A stretch of DNA of 64,000 nucleotides. Source: Cyanophora paradoxa CCMP329. Lineage: Eukaryota > Plantae > Glaucophyta. Under the pieces are notes generated by a model. That model was not told where the DNA came from. It ran no database searches and was given only the letters and a program-made list of their open reading frames with translations. Where the stretch lies: contig QPMI01000044.1 of NCBI GenBank assembly GCA_004431415.1, forward strand, positions 124,001 to 188,000, given 5' to 3'. Positions 1,965 through 64,000 of this stretch are shown here, piece by piece (the first letter of the stretch is position 1; every line of letters starts with the position of its first letter). A program made the translations under genes and the position numbers.

Positions 1965-3880
1965 GCTATCAGAAAGTATTGGGCTTCTATCAGAAAGAGA
2001 AGCAAGTGTGACTTGTACAATTACGATTGGGCTCTCAGGGTGAAAGAAATCGAAATCGAAAGCTACTTCCAAAAGCAAGCGCGCGCCTCGAGGCCCTGGA
2101 CCTGGCCCCTGGCCGCCCGGGGAAGGGTGGCGGTGCGGCAGACGGGCGCCGGCGCGGCTAGCTCCCCTGCCACTGGGCCTTCAGGGTGAGGGCCAAGAGC
2201 GTAAAAAGTCGCCTTGATGCTCTAGATTGGCCGGCCCGGGGAAGGCCTTGCACTTCAGCCTTGCCACTGGGCCTTCAGGGTGAGGGCCAAGAGCGTAAAA
2301 AGTCGCCTTGATGCTCTAGATTGGCCGGCCCGGGGAAGGCCTTGCACTTCAGCCTTGCCACTGGGCCTTCAGGGTGAGGGCCAAGAGCGTAAAAAGTCGC
2401 CTTGATGCTCTAGATTGGCCGGCCCGGGGAAGGCCTTGCACTTCAGCCTTGCCACTGGGCCTTCAGGGTGAGGGCCAAGAGCGTAAAAAGTCGCCTTGAT
2501 GCTCTAGATTGGCCGGCCCGGGGAAGGCCTTGCACTTCAGCCTTGCCACTGGGCCTTCAGGGTGAGGGCCAAGAGCGTAAAAAGTCGCCTTGATGCTCTA
2601 GATTGGCCGGCCCGGGGAAGGCCTTGCACTTCAGCCTTGCCACTGGGCCTTCAGGGTGAGGGCCAAGAGCGTAAAAAGTCGCCTTGATGCTCTAGATTGG
2701 CCGGCCCGGGAAGGCCTTGCACTTCAGCCTTGCCACTGGGCCTTCAGGGTGAGGGCCAAGAGCGTAAAAAGTCGCCTTGATGCTCTAGATTGGCCGGCCC
2801 GGGGAAGGCCTTGCACTTCAGCCTTGCCACTGGGCCTTCAGGGTGAGGGCCAAGAGCGTAAAAAGTCGCCTTGATGCTCTAGATTGGCCGGCCCGGGGAA
2901 GGCCTTGCACTTCAGCCTTGCCACTGGGCCTTCAGGGTGAGGGCCAAGAGCGTAAAAAGTCGCCTTGATGCTCTAGATTGGCCGGCCCGGGGAAGGCCTT
3001 GCACTTCAGCCTTGCCACTGGGCCTTCAGGGTGAGGGCCAAGAGCGTAAAAAGTCGCCTTGATGCTCTAGATTGGCCGGCCCGGGGAAGGCCTTGCACTT
3101 CAGCCTTGCCACTGGGCCTTCAGGGTGAGGGCCAAGAGCGTAAAAAGTCGCCTTGATGCTCTAGATTGGCCGGCCCGGGGAAGGCCTTGCACTTCAGCCT
3201 TGCCACTGGGCCTTCAGGGTGAGGGCCAAGAGCGTAAAAAGTCGCCTTGATGCTCTAGATTGGCCGGCCCGGGGAAGGCCTTGCACTTCAGCCTTGCCAC
3301 TGGGCCTTCAGGGTGAGGGCCTTCAGTGTAAGGGGCTGAGGCCCTTCAGCCTTGGGATTGGGCCTTCAGTGTAAGGACTCGGATCGGATCGCTATCAGAA
3401 AGTATTGAAAGTATTGGGCTTCTATCAGAAAGAGAAGCGAAAAGTCTATCAGAAAGTCTATCGGAAAGAGAAGCAAGTGTGACTTGTACAATTACGAGTG
3501 GGCCTTCAGGGTGAGATGGTGCCGGTGCCGGTGATTCAGCCTTGCGATTGGGCTCTCAGAAAGTATTGGCCTTCTATCAGAAAGAGAAGCTTCTACCAGA
3601 AAGAGAAGCTTCTTCTATATTGGGACTTGTACAATTACGATTGGGCTCTCAGGGCGAGGGCCCGGATCGCTATCAGAAAGTATTGGGCTTCTATCAGAAA
3701 GAGAAGCAAGTGTGACCATGAGCCCGTGGCCGGCCCGAGGAAGGCCTTGCAATTCAGCCGTGCGATTGGGCTCTCAGGGTGAGCTCGAGGGCCCCCTAGC
3801 CGCCCGGGAAAGGGTCGCGGTGCGGCAGACGGGCGCCGGTGCGGCAGTACTAGTTCCCTTGCGATTGGGCCTTCAGTGCG
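1965..3880. repeat. Nested repeat field of ~50-75 bp modules surrounding the 94-bp array
   Basis: GCTATCAGAAAGTATTGGGCTTCTATCAGAAAGAGAAGCAAGTGTGAC-like module at ~1965, ~3391, ~3555 and ~3669. The segment ~2090-2180 is similar to ~3786-3877. Confidence 0.85.
2168..3321. repeat. Tandem array, 94-bp unit, 12 full copies plus a partial copy
   Basis: Unit TGCCACTGGGCCTTCAGGGTGAGGGCCAAGAGCGTAAAAAGTCGCCTTGATGCTCTAGATTGGCCGGCCCGGGGAAGGCCTTGCACTTCAGCCT starts at 2168, 2262, 2356, 2450 ... 3295. Copies are identical except for one missing G near 2710. Confidence 0.97.
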
Positions 3881-6800
3881 AGGGCCCGGATCGCGAGCAC
3901 GTGGCCGAGCAGCGCCCCCAGCTGCCCCCGCGCCCCTGTACCCCCCTCCGCCATGGCCAGCTCCTTCAGCCTCCCGGGGAGGAGGTCCTGTGGAGGGGGG
4001 GGGGGGGGGGGGGGGGGCGAAGGAGTCGGCGGGCACGCGATCGAGCGGCGGGGAGGGGTACGAGGAACTCGAACCTTCATGAGGTAGCCGTGAAGGCTCA
4101 CCCGGAAGGCCGTGGTCCCGGGGGGAAGGTCACGACCCAAGTCCTGGGGGGTGGGGGTACTCAGCGGCCGGGGAGGGGTCGACGTCGAAGGAGCAGCTCA
4201 TGGGGGTGCGCACGTGAAGGAGCCCCCAGACGCACAGGGGCGCGTCGGGGTGTCCCACGAGGGGAAGAAATGCCGCTTCCGGGTCCCGAACCAGGTTCTC
4301 CAGGACAGCGGGGGCGGTCGCTGCGCCCTCAGGTGAGACCGACCGGTTTTTTCTGCACGAAAAAGAACGGCGTACCCGTAGGGTTGAGCCCGCGGAGGAA
4401 CGCGACGCGTTCGACGAAGGGACGCTGGAGGGGGTACAGGTCGTTGGGGAGCGGCCGGACCACAAGCGGGGGCCGGTCGAGGAAGATCTCGGGGCGGGAC
4501 CTGCGCGGGCGTGGCGTCGGGGGGCGTACTCGCGCGCGCACTCCGACGAGGTCCCCGGGGGTACAGGTGCGCACGCGATCAGGCGCTCGATGTGGGCGGG
4601 GAACGGGCAACCGGGCTGCAGCACGCTGTCGGCCCAGAACTGGGCCTCTGCCTGGAACCACACGCCCAGGTCGCCGGCCGCCAGCTCCGGGGGCGGCTCG
4701 TGCCGGACCGGGGGTACCCCGAGCCCCATAACGGCCGGGCCCATGCTGGCCCACAGGGCGGCCGCGCGGAGCGCGGCCTCGGGGGGTAGGGGCGAGCCGG
4801 GCGGGATGGCCTGGCATTCTATAATTAGCCTCGCGTAGGCGTCGGCGGCCTGCTCGGGGGGCAGCTCCGTGTAGAGGGCGGAGAGGGTCTCCGGGGCGAG
4901 GTTCGAGGGGCTGGAACTCTGGGAAATCCGGTGCCGGTCCTGCGCGGCCGCGCGCATCGCCTCCTGCCACGCGCGCGGGTCGACGCGCGGCTGAGGCGGA
5001 GGCGGAGGCGCCGCCTCCGGAGGCCTAGGGGCCTCCCCCCTTTGCTGGGCCTGGGCCTGCGCCTGGGCGGGATGGGCCCAGGAGGGCGGGGGCCGGGGGT
5101 ACGCGTGCGACGGGGCTGCCGCTTCCGGCGCCCAGGCGGCCGGCGGCGTCGGCTGCGCCTGGTCGAGATGGCCCGGCGGAGGCGCCGCCGTGGGCGGCGG
5201 CAGCGCAGGCGGCGCCCAGCCGGCCGGCGTCGAAATCTCCAAGGGAAGTGGTGCCGACGGGTGCGCTGGCGCAGCGGGCGGGGAAGGGGAAGAAGGGCCG
5301 GCACCGGCGCCGGCCGGCCGCGGCGCGTCGCGGGGCGGACCTCCCACAGGCGGCGCCCAGGCGGCCGCCGATGACGGCGGCGGAAGCTGCGGCTGTTGCC
5401 GCGGCTGCGCCTGGTCGAGATGGACCAAGCCGAAGGGTGGCGGAGAAGCGTGTGCCGGGTCGAGGCGAGCAGCAGCAGCAGAAGCAGCTGCGGCCGGCGG
5501 ATCGGGGGGCTGGAGTCGGCCGACGGCTTCCAGGCCGAGGCCGCGGCTACTGGCCATGGCCGCGGTCGGCGCTGAGTTGGAGACCGGAGCGGGATGCTCG
5601 GACGGCGCCGCGCATCCCTCGCCCAGCGGTGCTGCTGCCGTGTACGAGCGGACGAGGATGCAGCCGTGGACGGGCGGTGCTTCCGGCGCCTCCACGTGCA
5701 ACTCGAAGTGCCGCCCCTCGTGCCAGGACTGACGCTCATGCGTGAGGCGCGAGCGGCAGGCCATGGCCGGCGCGGCGGGGCGGGGCGGCGGACCGAAGTG
5801 GCAACGATTGCGAAGCTCTCGCGGGAGAGGCCGGCGCGGTCGAGGGTCAGGCGCAAGGCGCAGCAGCGGCGGCCCTCGCCGGCCCCCTCGAAATGAAGGA
5901 GGGAAAATTCCGGGTCCTCTGCGCACAGCGTTGCGTACAGCACCGGCGCCCCGTCCACTGCGCCCCGTCCGGCGTCAGCCATGGATCAGATCAGCGCAGC
6001 GAGCGGTGGGGCGGGGCAGAAACGAGCCCGCATATCGAAGCGAGACGGTCAGGGTCCGGCCGGCCCAGAGGCCCGCGGCCCCGGAGGCGTCGCGCAGCTG
6101 CAGCTTCAAGCGGCACTTTGTAGTCACCGTGTAGAAAACGAAGCCCGCCCCCTCGTCATCCGCCGCCATGGGCGAGTAGACTGTCGCCCTGCGCCGCCCC
6201 CGTGATCAGCGCTCCGACCGGCCGGCCCGCCTCAGGCTGGGCCCCCACCGGTTTTGCCCGAGGGTCATGAGAACGAAGGTCGTTCCCGCCGCGCTGGGCG
6301 CCGGGCCGGCGCCCTCCTTCCCCTCCACGCGCGCCGCCGGCGCGGGCGTCGGCGCCCCTCCATCCTCCGAGCTCGCTTGCGGGGGCTGCCGACGGGCCGC
6401 ACGCGCATCTGACGGAAGTAAGCGAGCAGGGTCGAGAGAAGCGCACACGGGGGGCTCGGACCACGTGAAGTACCTAGTGGGACGGGTGCCGAGGCTGCGA
6501 CAGCAGGAGGGACCACCGACGCCGCTTGGAGGGCCCGCTCCGCGGCCGCCGCCGCCGCCGCTCGGGTCGCCTCGGCTCGCGATTGCGCGCCGTTCGCCCC
6601 CTCGAGCAGGCTCTGGATAGGAACGCGCAGGAGCGGCCCGGCGGGGCCGGCCGGCGGAGGCTGCGGCGGGGCTGAGGACGGCGGCCGCGCCTCGTCGGAA
6701 CGGCGGCGGCTCGACGCGGAGGGCTCCCCCGCCCCGCCCCCGCCCCCGCCTCCGCCTGCGGTGGCGCGGGGCCGCTGCCGCCGGAGTTCTGCATGGCGCG

Positions 6801-9385
6801 AAGGGCGGCGGCGGCGCCGGCAAACACGGCCGACCGGAGGGCCTCCTGCAGCGCCGAGGGCTCGAGGTCGGCCCGCCGAGCGAGGCGCGGAGACGGCTGG
6901 GGCGGCTGGGCGGCCTGGGCCTGGCCCTGGGGAGCACGGGGAGACGGGGCGCGATCGGCGGCGTGCGCGGGGCGCAGCTGCGCGGCCGCTAGGATGGCCG
7001 CCCCCCACCCGCTCCGCCATGCGGCGTCAGGGGGAGACGGCTGGGGCTGGGGCTGGGGCTGGGGCTGCGGCTGCGGCCGCGGCTCGGCGCGCTGGGCGGG
7101 GAGCTGAGGGTCCGCCTGCAGCCTCGCAGACGGCGGCGGCGGATACTGAGGCTCCAGCGGAGGCTGCGGCTGGGGGGAAGGAGCGGAGGAGGCGGGGGGA
7201 CGGAGAGAGGCGCGCTCGGGGGTACGCGGACGCTTGCGGGACGCCCTAGCCGAGGATGCGGCTGAGCGGGGCGGAGGCGGAGGCGGCGGCTGGGCCAGGG
7301 AAGCGTGCGGAGGCAGGGCCCCCACGGCGGCGCCCGCGTGGCGCAGCTGCGCGTCCGCGAGGAAGGCCCGCGCCCATCCGCCCCGGCAGGCGGCGTCAGG
7401 GGGAGACGGCTGCGGCTGCTGCTGCGCTTGCGGCTGCGGCTGCGCTGCCGTGAGCAGGGCCTCCCCCTCCCATCGCGGTCCAGCTCCTTCGTCCACGTCG
7501 GGGGACGGGGGCGTAGGAGGCCGAGCCTCCGCGGGGGAACGGGGAGGGGGCCGCGGGGGGTGCCCCGGCTCAGGTGAGCTTGCCGGCGGCTGAGAGCTTG
7601 CATGCCGGTGGGGGGTAGAGGAAAGGGACGGCGCGCAGGGGGGGCCGGCCGCCGGCTCGGGTACAGGCGGGAGCGGGGGGGGTACCGGCGGCCCCGAAGA
7701 AGAAGGGGCTTGACGGCGGCGATCGACGGCGGCCCGTCGCCCGCGGGCGCTCGGGCTCCCCCGCTCGCGCTCCGGCCGCCGGCCCCGGCGGCCCGGACCC
7801 CCGGCCGCCAAAAGCGGGAGCGACGGGGCCGGTCGCGGGTCGCCGCCGGCCTCCGTCGGGCCGGCGCCGCGCCCCGCGCCCTCGCCGCCCCCCTCGTCCT
7901 CCTCGTCCTTGACGACGACGCGGCGCCTGCGGCGGGGCGGCCGCGGCGAGAACAGCTCTTCGTCCTCGTCGCCCTCCTCCTCGCCGCCGCTCGCGCCGCT
8001 CCCGTCGCCAGAAGACCGTTCCTCCTCCTCCTCCACTGGAGACGCCGCACCGCTCCCGCCCGAGGCGGAGGCGGCGCGGCCGGAGGCCCGCCGCCCCCAC
8101 TCCCCCTTCCCCCCCTCCGCCGAGTCCTCTGGCCCCGCCAGCCGCCGCCGGAACGACGGCCGCGCCTTCCGCGGCGCTTTTCCTAATGCGCTGCCGTTGC
8201 CGCTGCTGCTGCCGCCGGCGCCGCCCTCCGAGCGACTCCTCTTCTCTTCGGTCCCTCCGGTCCGACCCGCCGCCGCCGCCGCCGTCGACTTGTGCGAGAT
8301 TCTTGCCATGGCGGCCACCGAGGCGCGCCGGGGTACGTAGACGAAGTCTCGCAGGTCCGCCGGTTCGGGGCGGAAGTCGAAGTGGGGTACCGGAGGATGG
8401 ATTTGCGGTCGGGGGGAGACCTGAGGGGAGGGTACGGGGGAGGCCCGCGGCTCGTCGGAGGGCCATGGCTGTAACGGCCTCTGCACCGGCGTCGGGCTGA
8501 AGGGATTCGGCAGCCTGCGGGAGTACCGGCGTCAAGGCTTCGAAGAGGGTATAAGGGGTGAGGGCAGCGTGGGAGAAGGGGGGGGGGGGGGGGTAGCGGA
8601 CTTTTCGAGCACTTCGTACTTCTTCAGGAACCTCTTTAAGCGCTTGAAGCCCTCCTCGCTCCGGGCCTCCGGACCGTTGGGATCCTTGAACCCCACCCGC
8701 TCGCTCGCATTCGGGCCGAACAGCGCGCCCCACCAGCGCTCCGACTCGTAGCCTGCCCCGGGGCGGCGTGAGCGGCGCGGGCTCGCTGGGAAGGGCTGAA
8801 GGCGGCGTGCGGCGAGGCGCACGGGCATTGGGGACGAGCCGGCGGGCGCCCGGCCCCAGGCAGATGAGGTTGAGCCGGTCGAGGTTCCGGGCTGCCTTCT
8901 CCTCCGAGTCCACCAGCGGCGTGCGAATCTTCTGAAGAGAGACACGGCGCATCGTCAGAGGCCGCGCGAAGGGCCGGTGCCGGGGCCGGGTACGGACGCA
9001 CAGACAACTTCAGCGCTAGCCTGCCGCTCCAGCGAAAGAAGGACCGCCAGCGCGGAGCAGCCTCGGCGGGGCGCCTCTCATCCACGTACAGGAGCACCCC
9101 GGGGTACCGGGACGTCGGTTCAGCTGCAGGCGCGCGCTGCGCGCCGCCGCCGCACGGCTCCCGAGACGGCCCCGCGCCCGGCTCCTCAGCTTCCTCCTCA
9201 TCTATTCCTACGATGTCTATCGGATCCTCCTCTTCTTCCAGCGCCGCATTCGAATTCCCGCCGGCGCCTGCAGCGGCGCGCGGCGAGTTGCGGGTCAGCC
9301 GCGGCGCGCCGCCATGGGCGCTTGGGCGCGAGCAGCGATCTCCTTGCATGTTAAGAACCGATCTAGGAGGGATAGGAGGTCGCAC
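3850..9385 (-). CDS. Family copy 1: spliced AP2-like + STAT-like/CudA-like + unknown C-terminal domain protein (5' end approximate)
   Basis: Exons encode SRYPGVLLYVDERR..PRWRSFFRWS|KIRTPLVDSEEKAARNLDRLNLICLGPGA (8820-9115) and GYESERWWGALFGP. The module LKLQLRDASG..TLTVSLRY..FAIVATS|SWHEGRHFELHV lies at 5645-6290, AALWASMGPAVMGLG at ~4740, and the gene ends VLAIRALALKAQSQGN* at 3850. Blocks are collinear with the other four copies. Confidence 0.7.
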
Positions 9386-14310: not shown

Positions 14311-14968
14311 GTTTGCGGGCGGGCTGAAGCTCTGGCACGCGGTCGACAAGGTCAGAGCTTGTGGGCGACGAACGAGAAATGACCGGGTGCTGCGGACCTC
14401 GGTTTAATAACCTCGCGGTAATGCGAGGCGTATGATGGAGACCGGCGAACTTACTAGGGGGGTACGCGGGCGGTCACCGCAGCCGGCCGGCTCCGCACCG
14501 GCCTAGCGCGCGCCATCCCCGAGCGCTCCAGAGCGCGCACGGCATCGACCACGACAGAATTCGCGAGTCCTACCCACGTTCGCCCGGCGAAAGCACCATC
14601 CCGTGTCGCGCACCGGCGCTGGTGCCAGCGAGTCCCACATTCTAACTGCACCGCCTGCGCTCCGGCGCTGCTGCCTGATCCTCTGCAGCCAACCTGCAGT
14701 TCCGGCGCCGCTTATCCGATCGTTGCATCTCGTTCTTCAAAGCTGTGCCATGAGAGCGTCAGCTGCGCCATGAGAGCCTCCGCGAGAGCATCTGCGAATT
14801 CATAGCTCAGCGGCTCGGCGCGGCAAACCCGGAGCGCCCGGCGGACAGCATCAGTCTAGAGCTCTTCCGAAGTTCAGCAGTGAGCTGCTCGTTGGGTCTG
14901 GTCCGTTCTCTACGTCGTCAGAAAACGGCTCTCGGATCCTGCAGCAGCGTGGCCGAGCGCGCGGTCCG

Positions 14969-30393: not shown

Positions 30394-30433
<40 letters not shown>

Positions 30434-30830
30434 TGCCGCCGCTGCCATTGCTGGAAGGGCCTCCAGTCGCGAGTTTCGCCACGGCGCTGCCGCTGAAGCT
30501 GAAGCTGCTGCTGCTAGCGGGCGGCTCGAATCCGCCGCTCGCCCCCTCATCCGGCTCCTCGTCGTCCTCGAGAATGTCTACGTCCTCCCCTTCTGACCAC
30601 AAGTCCTCCGGGCGCTCAGGGTCGGGGGCCCCGGTGTCCGGGATGGAGGCGCCAGCGATCGGCCCGATCTGCTGCTCCCGCGCCGTTTCCGCCACATCCC
30701 CCGATCCTGCGCTGGCAATGATGAGACGAGCGTGCGGCGGGAGCTCGAGGCGAGGCGAGTGGCGCGCTGCCGCCGCACCGCTTTCGGTCCGTGGAATCTT
30801 GGATGGCCGCATCGGCGTCCGCGAGGACTC
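25026..30830 (-). CDS. Family copy 3: AP2-like + STAT-like/CudA-like + unknown C-terminal domain; apparent 1-bp frameshift near 30362
   Basis: EQQIGPIAGAS..LWSEGEDVDIL, then YPGVTRYDKR..RWRSSWIWS|LYTPLADSEEKAARNLDRLNLICLGP (30035-30370). The module is at 27810-28460, followed by YVAALWASMGPAVLGIG and an end at LLGSVVAVRALLFN..FW*. Confidence 0.65.
26690..26980 (-). repeat. Coding minisatellite, 45-bp unit (PTAPAPGPQPQPAVQ), about 6 copies
   Basis: GGCTGAACC(G/A)CGGGCTGAGGCTGA(G/A)GCCCCGGCGCCGGAGCC repeats with a 45-bp period. Confidence 0.92.
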
Positions 30831-32629: not shown

Positions 32630-32663
<34 letters not shown>

Positions 32664-33225: not shown

Positions 33226-36200
33226 TCATGATCGCTGAGGCGGGGCCATCGCATGAACTCGAAGAGAAGCAGACGAGGAAGAGTTGAAGAGGAGGGCGCG
33301 GACGGCAACCACGGAGCTGAGGAGGTCCCTAAGATGCCCCGGCGCCGCGCGCCCGAGTGCCAGCACGCCGGTGGGCCCGCCCTGTCGCGCGCGCGCGCGC
33401 ACGCTTGTTTAGGGGAGGGGAAGGAGGCGGGGCGCGCGCGCGCCGGCCGCATAGACGTTCTAGATTTAATCATCTGCCTCCGTTACTGTTTAGGAGGACA
33501 CCGCCCCAGTGAAGTTGTTATAATCATCTAGATGCAGCCGGACGGCGCGCTAGAGCGGAAAGGGGCGCGCGCCGGCGCCGACCATAGAGACCGCGGGTCA
33601 CGATCGCGTTTTTTCGGAGCGCACCAGGCCGGTGAGGAACTGTCTCAGAATATGGACCGCGCGGCTCATTCCGGGAGGACGCTTGTCTCTCAGATCCTGC
33701 GCATGCGCCAGCAGACGATAGTTACGCAGGCAGCGTCTTGATCGATGAAGCGCAGGCGATCGATATCGTCTTGGAGCGCACCCAGAGCAGCGCGTCGACG
33801 GACTGCTCGACATTCGGGAGGTGTCCGAGGTGAGCGAAGATCGGGTTACTCAGGAGCTCCCGCAGCACGTCGCGCGCCGACACTGCGCAGGGCGACGATG
33901 AGCAGAGCAGAGCGAACGGGCGGAAACTATGAAATGAAATCGTGAAAAGCACCTGCCCCATTGCGCTCAAGGATGCCTGCGATTTGGACCACTACGGCGC
34001 GCTCCAGTGTTGGGGAGAGGAAGGGCAGCGGGCGCAGGCTCGGGACGGTAAGGAAGAACAGCTCCGCGTCGCCTCTGCGGGAGGCGAATTCGAAGACGAG
34101 CCGCGAGCTCGAGTCAGCTGTGAAGGCGCAAGGACCGCGGCTCGCGATCGATCAAAGGCGCACGTGATCAGGAGCTCGAGCTCGGGGTCGAAGGGGCATC
34201 CCGGCCGCAGCATGTCGTCTGCCCACGCTCCAGCGTCCTGAGGGGCGCGGGGCGGCCTCGGCCGGCCGATGCCCAGCACCGCGGGGCCCATGCTGGCCCA
34301 CAGAGCCGCGACGTAGAGACGGACCCCGCGCGCGCCCTGCTGCTGCGCGTCCTGCGGCCGCTGCTGCTGCTGGCCCCTGACCAGCGCGGCGAACGCGCTC
34401 GCCGCCTCCGCGGGCGCGAGCTGCAGCGCCAGCGATGTCTCCGGCGGAGCCGTGGCTCCGGCCCTCAAATACACGAGCACGAGCTCGCGCAGCCAGTTCT
34501 GCCACGCCGAGGGGCCCAGCGGCTGCAGCGCTAGCTGCGGGCCCAGGGGCAGAAAAGGTGTCGCACCATGCATACAAGGCGATGGCTGTAGCTGATGCTG
34601 CAGCGCTAGCTGCGGGCCCGGGGGCAGAGAAGATGCCGCGTCATACATACAAGGCAATGGCTGTAGCTGATGCTGCAGCGCTGGCGCTGGCGTCATCGCG
34701 TGGCAGCCCGCCGGCAGCGCCAGCAGGACCGGTAGCGCCGGTGCTGGCGGCACTGCGTGCCAGCCCGCCGGCAGGACCGGTACATGTGCATGCTGCAGAG
34801 GCGGCTGCGGCGCCGGCTGCGGCGCAGTACAGTCCAGCCCCGGGACCCGCTGCCCTGTGGCCGCTGACTGCAGCGGAGGCCAAGGTGCCGGCCATATGGC
34901 CGGCTGCGGCTCTAGATATTGGGGCGGCACTGCCGCTGCGTGCGGAGGCTGCACGGGGCCGCCGCCACTGGCGCTGGAACCGGCTCGCATGGCAAGCTCG
35001 TCCAGAGTTGGAGACGTGCTGGCGCCGGCGCCGGCGCCGGGCTGTGGGAGAGGCGTTCGATGCAGGTCTCTGCTGCTCCTTCGAGGGGCCATGCCGGATA
35101 CAGGCGGCTCTCCCGCCCCAGAAAACGACTGAGACGAGGCCGAGTGTACTTGCCGGTGCCCTTTTCTCGCCATCGATTCCGGATCTGGCGCCGTTTCTTC
35201 TGATCACGATCGCGAGGACCGAGTCAGCAAAGAAATCGCGGCGAGGGACGGTTCGAGAGACCGACCGCGCCGGGGAGAAGTGCGGGAGGGCTCGCATTCG
35301 GCTGCCTCCGGCCGAGATCCGGGAAACGCAGGCCTAGGGGGGTCGAAGGGAGCCGGGGAAGGGGCCGCTGGCCCGACGGCGCTGCTGATCGCGATGGCCG
35401 CGATGGCCGCGGGCGGCGCCGCGCACGCCTCCCTGCCGCGGACCGCCGCGGGCAGGGCCGGTTGCGCCGGCGGTGCGGGGGCGAGGCTCAAGGAAAGCGC
35501 GGAAGGGGAGGCGGCGGGCGAGGCGGAGGAGGCGGGATCGGCGCGGGCCGCCGACGGGTCGGGGAGAACAGCTGCAGTTGGCAGGTCGCAGGTATGAAGG
35601 CGTCCGACGGGGCCCAGCCCAGAGACGGGAGGCGTCACGGCCGCCGCGCCCAGCGACTCCGACTGCGAGCGCCGCTGGCTTGGCAATGCTGCGTGACGGC
35701 TTGGGGCCCGCCAGGCGGCGCGTCCGGTTCCGGGGGCCACGGACCGTGCGCGCGCGTGTGGACGAGGATGCGGCCGTGGACGCGGGGCGACCCCCGAGCC
35801 TTAACGTGCAATTCGAAGCGCCGCCCTTCGTGCCGGCGCTGCCGCCCCCGCGTGAGGCCCCGGCCCGGCAGCCATGGTCGGCGCGGCGGGGCGGCGGACC
35901 GAGGAGGCACGAATGGCGAAGCTCTCGCGGGAGAGGCCGGTTTCGTCGAGGGTGAGGTGGCAGGCGCGGCAGCGGCGGCCCTCGCCGGGCCCCTCGAAGA
36001 AGGCCAGCGGCAGGTCCACCGCGTCACCCGTCCCCGCCGGCCCCGACGCATGCTGCACCGGCCACCCGTCCACTGCGCCCGGCCCCGCGTTAGTCATGGA
36101 TCAGAACAGCGCAGCGCGCGGCGAGGCGGGGCAGGAACGAGCCCGCATATCGAAGAGAGACGGTCAGGGTCCGGCCGGCCCAGAGGCCCGCGGCCCCGGA

Positions 36201-39200
36201 GGCGTCGCGAAGCCGCAGCTTCAGGCGGCGCGTCGTGACCACCGTGTAGGCCGCGAAGCCCGCCCCCTCCTCATCCGCGGCCATGGGCGAGTAGGCCTCC
36301 GGCCTGCGCCACCCTCGCGATCAGCGTCCCGAGCGGCCCGTTCCCCGCAAGAAACTCACCGGCTCCTTCCGCGGTTCATGAGAACGAAGGTCGTTCCCGC
36401 CGCGTCGGGCGCCGGGCCGCCGCCGCCCTTCTCCTCCGCATGCGCCGCCGGCGCGGGTGCCGGTGCCCCGCCATTCTCCAAGCTCGCTCGTGGCGGCTGG
36501 GGGCGGCCGACGGCTTCGAATCCAAGGCCGTGACCAGTGGCCACTGACGGCGCCGGCTGGGCGGCCGGAGCCGGCGACTCGGACGGCGCCGCCGATCCCT
36601 CGCACTGCGGCGCTGCTGCGGTGCACGAGCGGACGAGGATGCGGCCGTGGACGCGGGGCGACCCCCGCGCCTTCACTCGCAATTCGAAGAGCCGCCCTTC
36701 GTGCAGGTGCTGTCGGCGGCCCCTCCGCGTGAGGCGCGCGCCGCAGGCCATGGTCGGCGCGGCGGGGCGCGCGGCGGACCGAGGAGGCACGAATGGCGAA
36801 GCTCTCGCGGGAGAGGCCGGTTTCGTCGAGGGTGAGGTGGCAGGCGCGGCAGCGGCTGCCCTCGCGATCGCCAGCCCCCTCGAAGAAGACTAGCGGCAGA
36901 TCCGCCGGGTCGCCCGTCCCCGCCGGCCCCGACGCGTGCTGCACCGGCGCCCCGCCCACTGCGCCCGGCCCCGCGTCAGCCCGCGCAGCGCAGCGCGGAG
37001 TGGGGCGGGGTAGGGACGAGCCCTCGTATCGGAGCGAAACGGTGAGGATCCGGCCGGCCCAGAGGCCCGCGGCTTCTGAGGCGTCGCGCAGCTGCAGCTT
37101 GAAGCGGCGCGTAGTGATCGCGGTGTATGCGGCGAATCCCGGCCCCTCCTCGTCCGCCGCCAGAGGAGAGTACGCCGCTTTGAAGTGCGGCATCAGTATT
37201 CTTCTCATGAGAATAAAGGTCGTTTCCGCCGCGCCAGACCGTGGGCCCGCGTCCCCCTCCTTCGAAGGGGGCGGCAGAGGGGCCGCACGCGCGTCTGCTG
37301 GAAGAGGGGGTGAAAAATGCGCCGAGGGGCTTATGCGGGCACGGGATGGCTCTCACCGGACAAAGCAGCGGCTGAAGCGGGCGCCAGGGTGGCGGCAGAA
37401 GGAACAGGACGCGTCTGCTGAGCGGACGCTGCTGGAACGGTCGGGGCGGGGCCGGCATCGGCACTGACCGGCCGGCTGCGCATGCAACAGGAAGGCGATA
37501 ATGGGGACGCGGTGAGGGCGGAGAGGGACGGCGCTGGACGGTCGGGGCACGAAGCCGAAGGAGGGAGCCAGGACGGGGATGGGCGACGGCTCCGGTCGAC
37601 GCTGGCCAACTCCGGCCACGGGCCCTCGGGCAGCCCCGCATCGAGGCTCCAAGAAAGTGCGGGAGGGGAGGCGGCGGGCGAGGCGGAGGAGGCCGCAGCT
37701 TCGTACGAGGAGGAGGCGGGGGCGGGCAGACGGAGCGTGGCGCCGCCGGTCGATCGCAAGGAGGGCGCCGCCGGTCGATTGCGAGGAGCGCGCGGGGCGG
37801 GGCCGGCGCCGGCGCTGAGAGTGAGAGGCGGGCCGAGGCTAGCGGCCGGGGCCTGCGTGGGACTGGAGGGCGCTGCAGCTTCTTGCCCCGTGAGAGGAGC
37901 GACGCTGAGTGGTACGCGGGGTGGCTGGCTCGGGGAAGGGGGCTCCGCCGCGGAGCCGCCGCGGTCGACGGCACGGGCCGCGGCCTCCGTTCCTCCGGAG
38001 GGCTCGCGGCCCGCTGGTGGGCCGGGGCCCGGGCTCCGCGGCGACTGAACGATCGGGGGCGGCGGAGAGGTCGATCGCGCGCCTTTCGGGGGTTCCGTCA
38101 GGAGCGGCAAAGTCAAAGGACGAGCAAACGCTCACCCGCCGCGAAGTCGGGCGCGGACGTCGACGTCGGGTGGGCGGTGGCGGCGGGCGGCGCCTTGGCC
38201 GCTGCCGGCGGCAGGGCGGCTGCCCCCGCTCCCGGCGGCCCGGCTGCCTTGACTGACGAGCGCCTAGGCCTGCGGCGGGGCGGCCGCGTGGATGAGAGCT
38301 CTTCGTCCATCTCCTCTTCCGCTACCGGCGGCGGCGCCGCCGCCGCCGCGGGCCGCTGGTGTACCCGTCTGGGCGCTGATAGTTTCAATCCCCCGAGCCT
38401 CCCGATCGCAAATCGTCGGGGATCCGGGGGCGCCGGCGCCCCCCGCGGCGCCTCTCCTCCTCCTCCTCCTCCGCCGCCCCGGTCGCCCTCCGACTCCCCG
38501 CCGCTCCCGCCCGGAGGCGGCGCCTCCGCCGCGCGCCTCCGCTTCGTTCCCAGTCCGGCCCGGCCCGCCGGCGGTGCCCCCAGAGCCGCCGCCACCACCG
38601 AGATATACGCCCTCGCGGCCGCAGAGGTGCGCCGACGCTCCCGCACGAACGGCTGGCTGCTGGCGGCTGGCGACGCCTCGGCGGCTTCGGGGGGCAAGGC
38701 TCGGAGGGGCCGTCGGGGGGCGGCGCGGGGAAGGGGTACGGGCGAGGCCCGCAACTCTCCCGCGCGCCGCGGCGCCCTGTGCGACTGCACAGGAGCGGAG
38801 GCGTCAGACCGGCTCGGCGACCTGTGAGGGAACCGGGGTCAGAGATCGGAGGGCGCGCGTAAACGTGTTTGGGAGGGGTATCGGACTTCTCGTAAACGTC
38901 GTACTCCTTCAGGAAGAACTCGATGCGCCTGTAGCCCTCCTCGCTCCGGGCCTCGGGGCCGTCGCGATCCGTGTACCCCACCCGCTCGCCCGCGCTCGGC
39001 CCGAACAGCGCGCCCCACCAGCGCTCCGACTCGTAGCCTGCCCCGCGGCGGCGTGAGGGGCGCGAGGGAAGGGCGGGAGGCGACGTACGGGATCGAGCTT
39101 CAGGGACGATCAAGGGGGCTCCCGGCCCGCAGCATATGAGGTTGAGCCGATCGAGGTTCCGAGCCGCCTTCTCCTTGGAGTCCGCTAGCGGCGTGCTATA

Positions 39201-39392
39201 CTGCGGGATGGGAAGATAGCCAGTCAGAGGCGGTGGAGACGGATCCGGGGAGGGGATGTGTGAGAGAGAAGAGAGACCTTCTTGTTAGAGCTCCACAAAA
39301 AGTGCGATCGCCAGCGTGGCGCGGCGCTAAGTCGCCTCTTGTCTACGTACAAGAACACCCCGGGGTAACGGGAAGCCCGGGACTCGCGCCCC

Positions 39393-39433
<41 letters not shown>

Positions 39434-40171
39434 ACCACCACCACCGCCGCCGCCGCCGCCGCCGACGCCGCCGCCGCTGCTGCTGCTGCTTCCGCCATCG
39501 CCGCTGCCGCCACCGCCACTGCTAGTGTTGCCGCCACCGCCGCCGCAGTCCAGACCGCCGCTGCCAGAGGGGTCTCGAGTCGCGGGCCCCGCCGGTACGC
39601 ACTCGAACTCTGCCGCGCCGCCGCGGCCGTTTCCGCAGCTGCTACTGCTGCTGCCGCCGCCGCTGCTAACGCCGAATGGCCCTTCAGTTGCGGGCCCCGC
39701 CGGCGTGCGATCGAATCCAGCCGCGCCGCTACCGCCGCAGGTGCTGGAGGGCGGCTCGAGTCCGCCGATCGCGTCCTCATCCGCCCCCACGTAGTCTACT
39801 AGAATGTCGACGTCCTCCCCCTCTGACCACAAGGCCTCCGGGTGCTCAGGATCGGGGGCCCCGCTGTCCGGGATATCGATGGATGCAAAGCTCGAGGCGC
39901 CAGCTGCAGCGATCGGCCCGCTCCGCTGCCCCAGCGCCATTGGCGCCACATCTCCCGGTCCTGCGTCGACAAAGATGAGTCGGGGCGATGAAAACACACA
40001 CGAGCTCATGAGGCGTGCACGTGGCGAGCGAGGCGAGGGGCGCGACGAAAGCGGCAGCGCACCGCGTTCGGTTCGTCGAAGCTTGGATGACCGCATAGGC
40101 ACGCGAGGACTCGAGGACTCGGCGTGCGCTCGGTGTACGGCTCCTTGTTCCGAAGCGGGAAACGAACGCAC
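33226..40171 (-). CDS. Family copy 4: AP2-like + two tandem STAT-like/CudA-like modules + unknown C-terminal domain (5' end approximate)
   Basis: SRYPGVFLYVDKRR..PRWRSHFLWS|YSTPLADSKEKAARNLDRLNLICCGPGA (39095-39375). Modules lie at 36625-37230 and 35755-36400, followed by YVAALWASMGPAVLGIG..WADDMLRPGCPFDPELELLITCA and an end at VRALLFN..PQRS*. Confidence 0.7.
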
Positions 40172-40859
40172 CAGGCTGCATCTGCCGCCGAGCGCCCCAG
40201 CCGTGCCTCTTTGCGCCGCTGACGCCGCTGGAGTGCCCGCCGGCCTCTGTCGAACGGTGAACCTGCAAGAGGGGTACGCGAGCGGTTACCCGCAGCCGGC
40301 CGGCTTCGCACTAGCAGAGCGCGCGCCTCCCCCAGGCGCTTCGGAGCGCGCAAAGCACCTACCAGGACAGAACCCGCAAGTCAAACCCACGTTCGCTCGG
40401 CGCGAGCACGTGCCGCGTTGGGCACCGGCGTCGCTGTCAGCGGTCTCGCATCCCATCTGCGCCACCTTAAGGCGCTGGATGACTTCCATTGGCCCAACAG
40501 CGCCAGCACCGCTCATTCGATCCGCATTCATTGGATCTCTTTCTTCTCGAGCAGTCTCGTCGGCTGCGGCATGACAGACTCTGCAAGAGCAGCTGCGAAT
40601 CGTTAGCCAGGACATCATGCGTCAGCTGGCGGCGAGGCGAGCCCGCAGCGCTCTACGGACGCTGCAGTCTCGATTGGGCTGAAGTCCAGGGGTCGTTTCC
40701 CGTTTTGGAACGAGCGTCCGAGCGCACGCTTTGATGGAAGAGTCCTCGCCGACGCCGATGCGGCCGGCCAAGCTTCAACGAGCCGAACGCGGTGCGCTGC
40801 CGCCGCGCGCCTCGCCTCGCCTCCCACCGCATGCTCGTGCGCATTCCTCATCTCTGTCG

Positions 40860-42380
40860 GCGTAGGACCGGGAGGTTTGGCGGAAACGGCGCGGGAGCAG
40901 CAGATCGGGCCGATCGCTGGCGCTTCCATCTTGGACACCGGGGCCCCCGACCCTGAGCGCCCGGAGGCCTTGTGGTCAGAAGGAGAGGACGTAGACATTC
41001 TAGGGGACGACGAGGAGCCGGATGAGGAGGCGAGCGGCGGGTTCGAGCCACTCTCCAGCAGCAGCGGCGGCTGCAGCCGCAGCGCCGCGGCGGAGCCCGC
41101 GACTGGAGGCTCGTCCGGCGGCGGCAGCAGCGGCGGCGGCGGAGGCGGCGGCGGCGGCGGCGGCGGCGCGGGTTGCGAGCCCCCGGCGTGCCGTCGGTCC
41201 CGGTACCCCGGGGTGAGCCTTTACGTGGATGAGAGGCGACCGGGCGCCGAGCCGCGATGGCGGTCCAACTTCTGCTGGAGCCGAAAGTTCAAACCGCACT
41301 TGTCGGCGCGCCCGTTCCCGGCCCCGCCCCCGTCCCTTCGCGCGGCCTCTGACGGATCCACTTCTCTTCACGCAGCTGAGCACGCCGCTAGCGGACTCGG
41401 AGGATAAGGCGGCCCGGAACCTCGACCGGCTCAACCTCATCTGCTTGGGGCCGGGTGCCTGCCGGCTCGTCCCCGAAGCCTGTGCGCCGGCCCCTCCCTT
41501 CCCAGCTAGCCCGCGCCGCTCACGCCGCCCCGGGGCAGGCTACGAGTCGGAGCGCTGGTGGGGCGCGCTGTACGGGCCGAGCGCGAGCGAGCGGGTGGGG
41601 TACACGGATCCCGACGGCCCCACGGCCCGGAGCGCGGAAGGGTACAAGCGCTTCAAGAGCTTTTTGAAGAAGTATAGCGTCCTTCAGAGGTTCGTTAGCC
41701 TACCCCTGCTAACTCCTGCTACCCCCCCTTCCCCCCCCCGCTTCCCCCGCCGACTCCCCTCCCACTCCCCCCGCTACTCCCTCCCCCTCCCCCCCAACCC
41801 CTCCGCACCCCCCCCCACCCCCCCGCCCCCCCCACCCCACCCCAACCACTACCCAACCACTACCCCCCTCCCCCCCAGCCCCCGCTACCCCCCCCCCCCC
41901 CCCCACACACTACTCCCTCCCCCTCCCCACCCGGGCCCTTGCCAGTTCCCAGAGCCTTGACGACCTGTATCCCCGCAGGTTGCCCAACGCCTCCGTCCCG
42001 ACGGTGATCCGAAGGCCGCCGCAGCCGTGGCCGGCCGAGGAACCTGCGGCCCGAGTCCGACCGGAGGCGAAGCGAAGCGGCGGCGCGCGGCGGAGGCGGC
42101 GCCTCCGGCGGGAGCGGCGGCGGCGGCGGCGCAGCGGGCGGCGGTAGCGGCGCAGAGGCCCCGCGGGAGGCGCCGCCGGCGCCGTCGGTGGTGGTGGCAG
42201 CCGGAGGCTCGGCCGCGGCGGAGGCGCCACGGGCCTTGCCCGTACCCCTCCCCGCGCCGCCCCCGACCGCCCCTCCAAGCCTCGGCCCCCGCAGCCGCCA
42301 AGCCGCCGCCGGCCCACAGCCTCCAGACGTTCGTCTTCGTACCCCGGCGCGCCTCGACGGCCGCGAGGGTGCGCATCGCC

Positions 42381-42420
<40 letters not shown>

Positions 42421-45400
42421 ACCGGGCCGGAGGCGAAGCAAAGCGGAGACGCTCGGAGGGCGGCGGAGAGGCGCCCGGGCGCACACAGGAGCGGACGGGC
42501 GGCCAGGAGCCCTCGCCCGTCGAGGAGGAGGAGGCGGCGGCGGCCGGGAGCGGCGCGAGCGGCGAGGAGGATGACGACGAGGAAGAGATCCGCTCTCCGC
42601 GGCCGCCCCGCCGCAGGCGCCGCGTCGTCAAGGACGATGAGGACGAGGGGGGCGGCGAGGCGGCGGTGCGCGGCGCCTGCCCGACGGAGGCCGGCGACCC
42701 GCGACAGGCCCCGTCGCTTCCGCCCTCCGGTGCCCCTCCGCTGCGCTCTCTCGCGCGCGCTCGCCCCTCCTTTCGGTCGCATCTGACCGGCGTTTTTGTT
42801 CCCGCGCAGGGATCGAACCGGGGACGGCGCCGGCGGGGGCGGAGATTAAGGCGGAGCCGCGGCCCGCGTCTCCCGCCTGGACCTGGTTGAACGTTCCGCC
42901 GTTCGCACTCGCCGGCTCTGCTGATCCGTTCACATCCGAACTCGCGGCGGGTGAGGTTCCCGCGCGCCCTCTGCCTTGTCGCCCTTCGCCTCTGCTGACA
43001 GGGTCCCACCAGACGCGCGAACGGCCCCTCCGCCGCATCCGATCGCGAAGGCGCCGCGGAGCCCCAGCCCATCGGCGGGTCGCGAGCCCTCCGCAGTTGC
43101 GGCCGGCGACAGCGACCGCCGCAGCTACGCAGCAGAGCCTCTTCTTCTGAGTGGGCGGCCGCCCTGCATTGCCCTTACCATAAAGCGAGAATCTGCAGCG
43201 GCAGCGCCCGCCAATCCTTCCCAGCGGGACCCGGCCGCTAGCCTCTGCAGCTGCCCGCCTTCAACGTTTGGCCCGCCCTCGGCCTCTGAGCAAGCCGATC
43301 CCCAGCGGGGACCGGCTGCCAGCCTTGGAGAAGCTCCGCCCGGCGAGCGGCAGGAGAGTTCCGATCCCGGCTCTGCTCCGCCCGCTGCGGCAGAGCTCGG
43401 CCCGCTCCGTCTCGCCCCGGCGGGCGCCGTCCCCAAACCTGACCCCGCCCCCGCCCCCGCCTCCTTCTCCTCCTTGTCGTCCTCCAAGGCATCCGCCCCT
43501 CCCTCGCCTCCCTTCGGCCTCGCGGCAGCAGCAGTAGCCGCAGCAGCGGCGCCGGCGGCGCCGGCGGGGCACGCGCCATCGCTCTGCGCCACTCGGCTGT
43601 CCCCGCAGGCGTGCTCGGAGGACCACGGGGCGTCCGTGCCCGCCCTGAAGGCGGCGGCGGCGCCCGGACCTGTCGGCGGCAGCGCGTGCGCGGCGGCGCC
43701 GGCCGTGCAGGGCGACTTCTTCGCCCTGCACGCGCTGGGGGCAGCAGTGGTGGCGCCCGCTCCTGTCACGATCGGCGGCGGCGCGTGTGCGGCGGCGCCC
43801 GCCGTGCGAGGCGACTCCTCGCCCTCCGACGCCGCCACGGCCTCCCCTCCGTCCTGGCTCCCCCCTCTGCCGGCTTGGACCAGAACCGTCAGCAAAGGCC
43901 TAGGGCCCGCTGGCGGCGCGGCCGACGACGTGGGGCCGGCGGTCCCTCCCCCAGTCCCCTCCAACTCCACTGGCCTCCCAGGAGCCCGACCAGCAGCAGC
44001 CGATCGCGAGGCCCCCCGCACTTCTTCCCCCCCCGGTCGGCCTCCCGTACCCGCCCTCTCCGCGACTTTTTGCTAAGTTTTGCTGATTGGGGTTTTCGTC
44101 CACAGCGATGCCGGGCCAGCGGCGTTCGCGGTCGGAGTCGCCGGCGGCGGCGGCCGCGACGCCACCCGCGGCCGCTGGCACGGCCGGGCCCACACGTGGC
44201 GATCGCGAGGCATCCGCGGCGCCGGCGCCTGTCACCGTTCAAGGCGCCGTCAACCCCTCGAGGTCCCATCTCAGCCCCGATGCCGGTCGGTCTCCCGCGC
44301 CCGCCCCCCTTGGACGTGATTGCTTTGCTGATCAGGCCTTCGTCATCAGGAGAGAGGGCGACGTGCCTGGAGCCGCTGGCGGGCACGGGGGCGGGAGAAG
44401 CGCCAGCGTCCGGCGAGGCCTCTCTCAACAATGGCGGCGTGGCGCCTCTGCGATCGGCTCCCCCACCGCCCAGCGCCGGCACCGGCGTGTCTCCGAGCCT
44501 GCCGCCCGGCGCGCCCTCGCATCGAGCGGAGCCGCAGCAGCCGGGTCCTCGACCGTCCGGCGCCGGCGCTTCAGTTCCGACTCCGCCGCCGCGGCCGCCG
44601 CCGCTGTCGCTGCCCATGCAACGCGGGCTTGTCGCGAGCTCAAGCTCCAGCGGCAGTACGGGCGCGGCCTCGCAGCTGAACCCGGCGCCTCGAACCGTCC
44701 AAGCCGAGACTATGGGCCTGAAGCTCCCGAGGCAGCTTCCCCCCCACGCGGCGGTGCCCTCAGGCGATCCAGCGCAGCCTGCCCGCGGGCCGCTGGCTCC
44801 GCCTCAGGGTCCGGCAGTGCAGCCCGGGGCTCAGCCGGCGGCTCCGGTGTGGGGGCCTCAGCCGCAGCACGCAGCGCTGCCGACGGCTCCGGCCTGGAAG
44901 CCTCAACCACTCCCCGCGGCGCCGCCGACGGCTCCGGCGCGGGGGCCTCAGCCGCAGTCCGCATTTCAGCCGACGGCTCCGGCCTGGAAGATTCAGCTAT
45001 TACCCGCGGCGCCGCTGACAGCTCCGGCGCCGGGGCCTCAGCCCCAACCCGCAGCTCAGCCGGCGGCTCCGGTGTGGGGGCCTCAGCCGCAGCCCGCAGC
45101 GCCGCCGACGGCTCCGGCCTGGAAGCCTCAGCCACTCCCCGCGGCGCCGCCGACGGCTCCGGCGCGGGGGCCTCAGCCGCAGTCCGCGGTTCAGCCGACG
45201 GCTCCGGCGCCCGGGCCTCAGCCACAACCCGCGATTCTGACGACGGCTCCGGCGCCCGGGCCTCAGCCTCAGCCCGCGGTTGTGCTGACGGCTCCGGCGC
45301 CGGGGCCTCAGCCTCAACCCACGGTTCTGACGACGGCTCCGGCGCCCGGGCCTCAGCCTCAGCCCGCGGTTGTGCCGACGGCTCCGGCGCCGGGGCCTCA

Positions 45401-46750
45401 GCCTCAGCCCGCGGTTCGGCCGACAGCTCCGGCGCCGGGGCCTCAGCCGGTGCAGCCTAGCTCGAGCTTTAGCCTTGGGTCGCATGGCCCGCTGCAAGCC
45501 GCCGTGCTGGACCCTGCGGAATGGCAGAACCGGCTGCGCGAGCTTGTGCTTGCTCACCTGGGGGCTGGAGCCACGGCTCCGCCGGAGACGTTCCTGGCGC
45601 TGCAGCTCTCGCCCGCGGAGGCGGCGAGCGCGTTTGCTGCGCTGGTCAGGGGGCAGCAGCAGGACGCGCAGCAGCAGGACGCGCGCGGGGTCCGTCTCTA
45701 CGTCGCGGCCCTTTGGGCCAGCATGGGCCCCGAGGTGCTGGGCATCGGCCGGCCGAGGCCGCCCCGCTCCTCGCAAGACGCCGGGGCGTGGTCAGACGAT
45801 CGCGAGATGCTGCGGCCGGGATGCCCCCTCGATCCGGATCTCGAGCTCCTGATCACGTGCGCCTCACGTTTAGTCGAAGTTCGAGTTCTTGTGCCATCCG
45901 ATGATCGTAGCTGACTCGCGGCTTGGCCCTTTCTTTAGTGGTGACCGGGAATTCTTCTTTGCGACGGTCCAGAGCCTGCGCCCGCTCCCGGGCCTGTCCC
46001 CCGCACTGGAGCGGGCCGTCGTTCTTCAGGTCTCGAGTATCTACAAGCACAGCCCCGCCGGTGCGCCGTGCCCCCTTCACAGTTATTCCGCGCTTAGCTC
46101 TGCCCGCGGCCGGCGCAGCGTCGGCGCGCGACGTGCTTCGGGAGGTTCTGCGTAACCAGATCTTCGCTCACGTTGCTCGCCTCCCGAATGCCGAGCAGTT
46201 CATTGACGCGCTGCTGCGGGTGCGCTTTATATGTTTCAAGTGGTTTAACCTGCGCATGCTGGCGCCGGAGCCGGCTCTGGCTTCCGGTGCTCGATAATAA
46301 TTCAGATTCGATTAGTTCAATGCATACTTATGCGTTTTTCTAGAGTCTGTTGCATTCGTACATATTTTTGACAACAGCCACCCGCTCCGCGCCTACCGGA
46401 TACTGGGATGCTGACTGCAGGAGTCAATGCATATATACTTAAGAATTTGCAAATTTGCAGCGATCCGCATCATTATCCTCTGCTGATCATGCGCCTTCGA
46501 TGCAGGATCTGAGATCAGTCCTGCCCCCGGGTACAACCCGCGAACGACTTGAGCTGAGACTGCTCATCGAGGGCCTGGTGCGCTTCGAATCCCGGGCGCG
46601 CCCCTTTCCGCTCCAGGACTCGAGCTGGCGTGGCAGGGAGGTCCCGCGGGCGTCCTGGCGCTCCGGGACTCCGCGCCGGCGCTGCTGAAGCAAGTGCTCA
46701 GCTTCGTGTTCACCATCCGCGCCCTCCGCTTCAGCTCGCCTTCAGGATGA
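40860..46750 (+). CDS. Family copy 5: AP2-like + Pro/Gln repeats + unknown C-terminal domain; no STAT-like/CudA-like module (5' end approximate)
   Basis: SRYPGVSLYVDERR..PRWRSNFCWS|LSTPLADSEDKAARNLDRLNLICLGPGA (41195-41480), GYESERWWGALYGP, YVAALWASMGPEVLGIG, ARDVLREVLRNQIFAH, QDLRSVLPPGTTRE, and an end at FTIRALRFSSPSG*. Confidence 0.7.
44820..45450 (+). repeat. Coding minisatellite, 45-bp unit (PTAPAPGPQPQPAVx), about 14 copies
   Basis: CGGCTCCGG..GCCTCAGCC repeats with a 45-bp period; same unit family as 26690-26980. Confidence 0.92.

Positions 46751-54751: not shown

Positions 54752-64000
<9,249 letters not shown>

Follow-up and report, generated by a model that had tools for sequence, protein, structure and literature searches.

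A stretch of 64,000 nucleotides from the glaucophyte Cyanophora paradoxa CCMP329 (assembly GCA_004431415.1, contig QPMI01000044.1, positions 124,001 to 188,000 of the forward strand; hereafter the window, within which all positions are given) carries a cluster of five paralogous genes, c1 to c5. Two of them (c4 and c5) are seen in RNA, and all five probably encode large, mostly low-complexity proteins with one strongly diverged module of the AP2 superfamily joined to a conserved helical extension. This is not a new kind of system; what is new is the conserved extension on an AP2-superfamily module, which is shared only with other C. paradoxa proteins.

Motifs were searched by a six-frame scan of the whole 64-kb window, and collinearity of the copies was established by self-BLAST and composition-corrected tblastn. 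Five motif-bearing loci were recovered on strands -, +, -, - and +, the same collinear set described in an earlier note made from the letters of this DNA alone; all the motifs quoted there were present, including the variable stretches and TRYDKRQLGAPQ of c3. The five-copy family is real and far beyond chance. Each gene extends over about 5.3-6.9 kb, the coding parts of the window being 70-78% GC, and the copies share a common order. A short conserved N-terminus (MEESS.TPMRP..) is followed by acidic residues and a run of Gly; then come the AP2-like block and a long body rich in Ala, Pro, Gln and Gly, whose tandem repeats differ from copy to copy, and lastly a conserved C-terminal domain, for which there are three exon blocks. 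The most diverged paralog is c1. The encoded proteins would have an acidic N-terminal stretch and poly-Gly linker, then one predicted DNA-binding module of about 105 residues; basic patches of the KRRR type, a repetitive middle rich in Ala, Pro and Gln, and a helical C-terminal domain that is conserved would follow.

The module is spread over three exons (Table 1). Exon 1 would supply three beta-strands (YPGV.., RWRS.F.W and a short third strand), exon 2 a RAYD-type helix (SEEKAARNLDRLNLICLGPGA..LVP) and exon 3 a family-specific extension of about two helices (YESERWWG..GY.DPDGP..FLKKY). As had been noticed before, the helix exon is nearly invariant and the sheet exon variable (protein identity between copies 80-94% versus 33-68%). 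The sheet differences are concentrated in strands 1 and 3 and in the hairpin, and RWRS.F.W is invariant in all five copies.

RNA evidence covers 38000-43900, that is, the head-to-head pair c4/c5, and consists of contigs from three runs of three studies. Twelve joints with GT-AG or GC-AG ends, each in the sense of the respective gene, were found in the RNA contigs and none in a DNA run, so the three runs behave as RNA. Intron borders were set to canonical dinucleotides; alignment was used to place the exons of c1 to c3 and intron 3 of c5. Both c4 and c5 are transcribed and spliced, including the domain introns, and the reading frame of c4 is open through all five of its RNA-supported introns. 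The earlier note had allowed for the case that none of the copies is transcribed, which these spliced contigs exclude. Its proposal that the domain is split by an intron held in so far as splicing was seen in the contigs of both genes; the borders and the end of the sheet exon needed correcting. The sheet exon is longer than had been assumed, running to ...WSRKFKPHLS at 41305 in c5 and to ...WSSNKK at 39278 in c4, and therefore also encodes the short third strand. Intron 2, which has GC-AG ends in c5 (41306-41375), is in phase 0 and intron 3 in phase 1; the G of 'GYES' is intronic, and the junction codon gives C or R ahead of YESERWWG. Intron 3, between the helix and extension exons, was observed at 51 nt in c4; homology puts it at 70 nt in c1, 73 nt in c3 and 57 nt in both c2 and c5.

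In c2 (15476-15532), c5 (41482-41538) and c4 (39038-39088) the length of intron 3 is a multiple of three and the intron is free of stop codons; its retention would lengthen the link from the AP2 core to the extension by 17-19 residues without a frame shift. The RNA contigs of the divergent pair c4 and c5 end about 25-55 bp apart (c4 reaching 40245, c5 starting from 40271 or 40300), which implies a very short shared bidirectional promoter region. The 5' leader of c5 is at least 430 nt. The upstream/5'-leader regions of c2 (14440-14860) and c5 (40252-40673) are about 70% identical over 420 bp, and the leader/promoter was therefore taken as part of the duplication unit.

All tests on the window domain treated its exons separately or used unsplit homologs from the databases. 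The helix-exon profile was aligned with 19 canonical AP2 domains using hhalign (prob 88%, P 2.8e-6), columns 7-33 falling on AP2 positions 34-60; the amphipathic RAYD element of AP2 (..EEAARAYD..A....GP.A..NFP) is thus found in register in this exon. HMMER was used to search a whole library of 1.84 billion representative proteins with a profile built from the helix and extension exons (A3); 10 proteins matched at E up to 1e-3, none of them below 1e-10. Six of the 10 were AP2 proteins, aligned over the helix region and for the most part from Chlamydomonas sp. UWO 241; they have 2-4 AP2 domains that are significant in Pfam, apart from one protein whose domain is sub-threshold. Three of the 10 were C. 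paradoxa proteins that carry the module. The complete six-frame translation of the window (1,650 fragments) was also scanned with an in-house AP2 hidden Markov model (HMM). The helix exons of c2, c1 and c5 took ranks 1 to 3, in that order, with that of c3 joint 4th and that of c4 joint 15th; four of them started at HMM position 34 and c4 at 35. The scores were low (2.1-9.7 bits, helix exons only).

Three C. paradoxa proteins without a Pfam match were found as relatives (EukProt EP00741): tig00001042_g6593 (P0003, 1726 aa), tig00000391_g24868 (P0006, 595 aa) and tig00021795_g23535 (P0011, 887 aa; from a separate search), with E-values in the A3 search of 5.8e-9 for P0003 and 7.1e-5 for P0006. 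In each of them a module of about 105 residues is repeated in tandem, unsplit, 3 to 7 or more times; it is made of a sheet, a helix (R.RDR..I...GP.A) and an extension (Y..E.FY..LF....P.VGVHDP....RL..FL). The helix and extension of the window copies were aligned by hhalign with 14 such modules (A3 versus profile A7) at prob 97.9% and E 4.5e-13 over 72 columns, so that both the helix and the YxxExFY-type extension of the Cyanophora module are present in the window copies. Module 1 of P0006 was matched to AP2, profile to profile, in the same register as the window helix exon (P 5.8e-4). By eye, RWRS.F.W of the window copies parallels RFQSKIVW of P0006, with a hairpin longer than that of AP2. As the earlier note had supposed, the family looks lineage-restricted, relatives having been found only in C. 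paradoxa.

The segment P0006:46-156 was modelled with AlphaFold2 using the 14-module alignment (predicted local distance difference test, pLDDT, 88.7; predicted template modelling score, pTM, 0.82). The model has the order strand-strand-strand-helix followed by further helices (strands 7-13, 16-23 and 26-33; helix 36-51; short helix 53-58; helices 72-78 and 96-110). It was compared exhaustively with 48,161 PDB representatives, and the top three structures were AP2 domains: WRINKLED1 (7wq5_B, Z 7.3, root-mean-square deviation 2.7 over 80 residues), TEM1 (7et4_A, Z 6.1) and AtERF1 (2gcc_A, Z 4.8, root-mean-square deviation 2.2 over 56/63 residues, 30% identity). Unrelated structures began at Z 4.0. 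Foldseek returned no significant E-value with the same model, the TEM1 AP2 domain having by far the best TM-score (0.49/0.54), and the structural neighbours of the module in the ESM Atlas were AP2, HNH-AP2, 'AP2 EREBP' and phage-integrase clusters. On the predicted structure of this homolog, the Cyanophora module has the DNA-binding fold of the AP2/integrase type, to which an extension of helices peculiar to the family is added. The window's own domain may be given the same fold because of its helix/extension homology and its conserved YPGV / RWRS.F.W pattern.

AP2 domains contact DNA through their sheet, as in the AtERF1-GCC box structure. The window proteins may by analogy be nuclear, sequence-reading DNA-binding regulators that use the sheet in the same way, since they combine an acidic N-terminus, one AP2-type module, KRRR-type patches and a low-complexity body.

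The ratio of nonsynonymous to synonymous divergence (dN/dS) was calculated per exon by the Nei-Gojobori method for all pairs of the five copies, together with the proportions of synonymous (pS) and nonsynonymous (pN) differences. Values were pS 0.47, pN 0.30 and dN/dS 0.50 for the sheet exon; pS 0.26, pN 0.11 and dN/dS 0.36 for the helix exon; and pS 0.21, pN 0.12 and dN/dS 0.52 for the extension exon. The domain exons are thus shown to be under purifying selection (dN/dS 0.36-0.52). The earlier note had read the family as one that diversifies in DNA specificity; with a pooled sheet-exon ratio no higher than that of the extension exon and pairwise sheet ratios of 0.27-0.76, below 1 in every pair, this reading was not supported. 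Nucleotide identity between copies was 48-75% in the sheet exon and 49-70% in intron 2, and 78-94% in the helix exon, 80-98% in intron 3 and 81-90% in the extension exon. Synonymous and intron divergence are both about twice as high around the sheet exon, and the variability of that exon is mainly due to its silent sites being about twice as diverged as well. Intron 3 is as conserved as the exons that flank it, so selection on the protein is no explanation for the uniformity of this block. Moreover, the C-terminal domain gives the gene tree (c1,(c2,(c3,c4,c5))), with c1 saturated at silent sites there (pS 0.53-0.60), whereas c1 and c2 differ in the helix/extension block by a pS of 0.15-0.16. 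Because intron 3 is conserved with the block, and because the low divergence of the block contradicts the C-terminal tree, these observations are best explained by gene conversion of the exon 2-intron 3-exon 3 block (about 310 bp) among the clustered copies, with the sheet exon outside the tract. Conversion would keep the block uniform while the sheet exon diverges at the family background rate.

A different account would have the sheet exon under diversifying positive selection for paralog-specific DNA motifs and the helix held by purifying selection. It draws on a sheet exon that differs in every copy around a conserved RWRS.F.W core and next to a conserved helix exon, and on the use of the sheet by AP2 domains to read DNA. 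However, sheet variability tracks neutral divergence, no pair exceeds a dN/dS of 1, and the low divergence of the helix/extension block includes an intron, so this account appears unlikely. Positive selection at a few sheet positions might still escape a comparison of five short sequences, though no sign of it was seen here.

Several results weigh against assigning the window domain to AP2. With Pfam PF00847 no domain exon gave a match, although E was allowed to rise to 10. Taken by itself, the sheet exon shows no significant likeness to AP2, whose YRG element has basic N-terminal strands that begin YRGV and a strand 2 of the W.A.I type: its profile matched AP2 by SRYPGV alone (AP2 positions 1-8, P 0.017, 8 columns) and gave no alignment with the sheet columns of the Cyanophora modules (A7), with which the R..S...W pattern of strand 2, seen by eye, is the only shared sheet feature. 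AP2 sheets have conserved Arg/Trp base contacts, R-x-R-x-W in strand 1 and R and W in strands 2 and 3. The canonical R-x-R-x-W motif is absent from strand 1 of the window copies, which reads GV(S/F/N/L/T)L(Y/E).., and Arg and Trp are conserved instead in strand 2 (RWRS.F.W); contact geometry and binding mode may accordingly differ from those of canonical AP2. The whole Cyanophora module profile matched AP2 weakly, and a Z of 7.3 is within reach of unrelated small folds. A three-stranded antiparallel sheet on one helix was found in the unsplit homolog P0006:46-156, and the fold evidence is that of the homolog and not of the window's own spliced domain. Splicing was checked for c4 and c5 only, and two copies have broken frames (below). 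No relevant match came from searching PDB sequences with the profiles of the sheet, the helix and the module.

On such grounds (silence of Pfam on the exons and on P0003 and P0006, the weak profile match of the Cyanophora modules, missing strand-1 Arg/Trp contacts and moderate structural Z-scores) the AP2 likeness might be convergent or due to chance, the domain being an unrelated lineage-specific one that binds, for example, protein or RNA. This is improbable: the helix is matched in register, six of 10 library matches, the top three PDB folds and the Atlas neighbours all point to AP2 and nothing else is indicated, and the YPGV start and the LVP/LNYP end stand at AP2-like spacing. That the window domain belongs, though strongly diverged, to the AP2/ERF (integrase-type) superfamily is largely supported. 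Of the AP2-like domain first proposed, the helix exon, the library matches and the fold of the unsplit Cyanophora homolog bear it out, and the sheet exon and the exon-by-exon Pfam searches do not. It is hidden from annotation at the level of open reading frames or exons, as had been said: besides the silence of Pfam, no gene models of the five loci were found in the protein libraries searched, which frame-breaking homopolymer indels may explain.

The frame breaks concern c3, with a 1-nt deletion relative to c5 just before YPGV (near 30365), and c5, in which the frame drifts at 41979-42300. In RNA contigs of two studies an additional C stands after 42244 and another after 42259, and the two restore exactly the frame change needed in c5. 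Comparison of c5 with c4 suggests that a G has been lost near 42106 and that the frame shifts once more between 41980 and 42064. A further c5 intron at 42053-42136 was considered as a cause of the drift and could not be settled, the RNA contig there being a chimera with c4. At least some of the breaks are probably homopolymer indel errors of the assembly in GC-rich runs, and they should not be read as proof of pseudogenisation. Together with the lack of gene models, the long repeat-rich low-complexity bodies and the absence of any other Pfam domain, these breaks might suggest a decaying or selfish repeat, that is, pseudogenes or element-borne reading frames transcribed without a working protein. 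This is very unlikely, since dN/dS is below 1 in all conserved blocks, the C-terminal domain included, the introns keep their positions and phases, c4 reads through without a break across its five verified introns and two of the c5 shifts are mended by RNA; nor were transposase, terminal repeats or other hallmarks of an element seen in flanking reading frames.

As a diverged AP2-type module, the window domain was compared with known systems. Like AP2/ERF domains (PF00847; 2GCC/1GCC AtERF1, 7WQ5 WRINKLED1, 7ET4 TEM1), it would have a core of about 60 residues with three antiparallel strands and then an amphipathic helix, and it shows what may be a YRG-like start (SRYPGV), a RAYD-like helix with AARNLD for AARAYD, the GP.A turn and an (N)FP-like end (LVP). 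It differs in lying below Pfam detection, in its longer strand 1-strand 2 hairpin, in being split by two short introns, in having R-W-R in strand 2 while the R-x-R-x-W of strand 1 is replaced, and in its fusion to a conserved helical extension of about 50 residues (YESERWWG..FLKKY), apparently packed with the core as one unit. P0003, P0006 and P0011 have the same composite module and are likewise GC-rich, of low complexity and without a Pfam match, with an identity of about 35-45% to the window copies in the helix/extension part. They have a tandem array of modules and another C-terminal end. Each window gene has a single module, with a sheet start (YPGV) closer to AP2, and a conserved C-terminal domain particular to the cluster. 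Multi-AP2 proteins of algae (for example Chlamydomonas sp. UWO 241 KAG1661752.1) and ApiAP2-type proteins are likewise lineage-specific AP2-type expansions of protists and algae in large low-complexity proteins, but the domains of the green-algal ones are canonical (Pfam E 1e-17 to 1e-31), are without the YESE-W-G extension and, outside the helix, have no close sequence kinship to the window copies. The fold class is shared by homing endonucleases of the HNH-AP2 kind and by the DNA-binding domains at the N-terminus of phage tyrosine integrases, both among the ESM Atlas neighbours, but the window genes have no HNH or recombinase domain; they are cellular genes that are spliced and encode acidic and low-complexity regions. 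No description of an AP2-like module with such an extension was found in the literature on AP2 in Cyanophora.

Transcription-factor censuses of early-branching algae depend on Pfam-type profiles. An AP2-derived family missed by them, because its domain is diverged and intron-split and its loci have assembly frame errors, would change estimates of the glaucophyte regulator repertoire and alter the view of how old AP2-type regulators are in Archaeplastida. Structural and DNA-binding work has a defined target in the module and its fixed helical extension, and the mosaic of conversion and divergence offers a small and clean example in which concerted evolution affects only part of a domain. A broader and less probable reading is that this is an undescribed, putative DNA-binding module confined to glaucophytes, too diverged for Pfam to reach and occurring in two architectures, single-module giants in a cluster and tandem multi-module proteins, in which conversion keeps the scaffold uniform while the sheet exon drifts or adapts and gives paralogs different DNA targets. 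If true, a converted scaffold with a free sheet exon would be a modular, exon-by-exon route to new transcription-factor specificity.

The first block of the C-terminal domain of c5 was modelled with AlphaFold2 as helical at medium confidence (pLDDT 69.7), with no fold match in Foldseek. No look-alike of the C-terminal domain was found in the ESM Atlas, and a word search with it (candidates of 422-1342 aa) gave no match. Pfam searches with the exons of both termini and with the long internal reading frames of c1, c2 and c4 gave only two chance-level rows, and reading frames between and beside the five genes had no Pfam match. The in-frame coding repeats of the body (Table 1) differ among the paralogs, and the protein bodies grow and shrink by repeat slippage.

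Table 1. Positions in the window of the five genes, their module exons, introns, repeats and C-terminal domains.
Feature	Position	Strand	Remark
c1 whole gene	3960..9262	-	approximate span; acidic stretch 9244-9170
c1 domain block	9112..8604	-	
c1 sheet exon part	9002..9112	-	SRYPGV..RWRSFFRW..LKLS; GTGCGT donor at 9001, inferred
c1 helix exon	8823..8928	-	..TPLVDSEEKAARNLDRLNLICLGPGA..LVPNA
c1 extension exon	8604..8752	-	YESERWWG..FLKKY
c1 C-terminal domain	4972-4568	-	diverged
c2 whole gene	14557..21483	+	approximate span
c2 domain block	15203..15683	+	
c2 sheet exon part	15203..15304	+	
c2 intron 2	15305-15369	+	inferred
c2 helix exon	15370..15475	+	
c2 intron 3	15476-15532	+	inferred; 98% identical to that of c5
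c2 extension exon	15533..15683	+	
c2 coding tandem repeat	19589-20278	+	129 nt x 5.3
c2 C-terminal domain	20309-21471	+	
c3 whole gene	25104..30836	-	approximate span
c3 domain block	30363..29812	-	
c3 sheet exon part	30265..30363	-	QYPGVTRYDKRQLGAPQRWRSSWIW..
c3 helix exon, intron 3 and extension exon	29812..30139	-	helix exon 30139-30034; extension exon 29960-29812
c3 coding tandem repeat	26681-27084	-	45 nt x 9
c3 C-terminal domain	26466-25104	-	
c4 whole gene	33274..40123	-	approximate span
c4 domain block	39373..38887	-	
c4 sheet exon part	39278..39373	-	ends 39278 in phase 0; RNA joint 39200/39278
c4 helix exon	39089..39200	-	RNA joints, translation
c4 extension exon	38887..39037	-	RNA joints
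c4 introns	39961-40062, 39201-39277, 39038-39088, 38822-38886, 38083-38135	-	RNA-supported
c4 C-terminal domain	34522-33274	-	
c5 whole gene	40734..46750	+	ATG 40734 to stop ~46750
c5 domain block	41198..41689	+	
c5 sheet exon part	41198..41305	+	SRYPGVSLYVDERRPGAEPRWRSNFCWSRKFKPHLS
c5 helix exon	41376..41481	+	
c5 extension exon	41539..41689	+	
c5 introns	40792-40865, 41306-41375 (GC-AG), 41690-41978, 42730-42809, 42951-43012	+	RNA-supported
c5 intron 3	41482-41538	+	inferred from alignment
c5 coding tandem repeat	44819-45449	+	45 nt x 14
c5 C-terminal domain	45504..46750	+	exon blocks 45504-45869, 45998-46243, 46604-46750

Further repeats were recorded around the cluster. Just upstream of the 3' end of c1, a 94-bp unit forms a tandem array at 2168-3321 (12.3 copies, 99% matches), with diverged partial copies of the unit at 1966-2043/3574-3657 and 2106-2194/3793-3886. 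Self-BLAST also revealed a unit of about 1836 bp tandemly triplicated at 49315-54830 (99.5% identity). A 1.8-kb inverted duplicate (86.8% identity) has one copy between c2 and c3 (21895-23674) and the other just past c5 (47859-49644), and its first 330 bp recur at 92% in every unit of the triplication.

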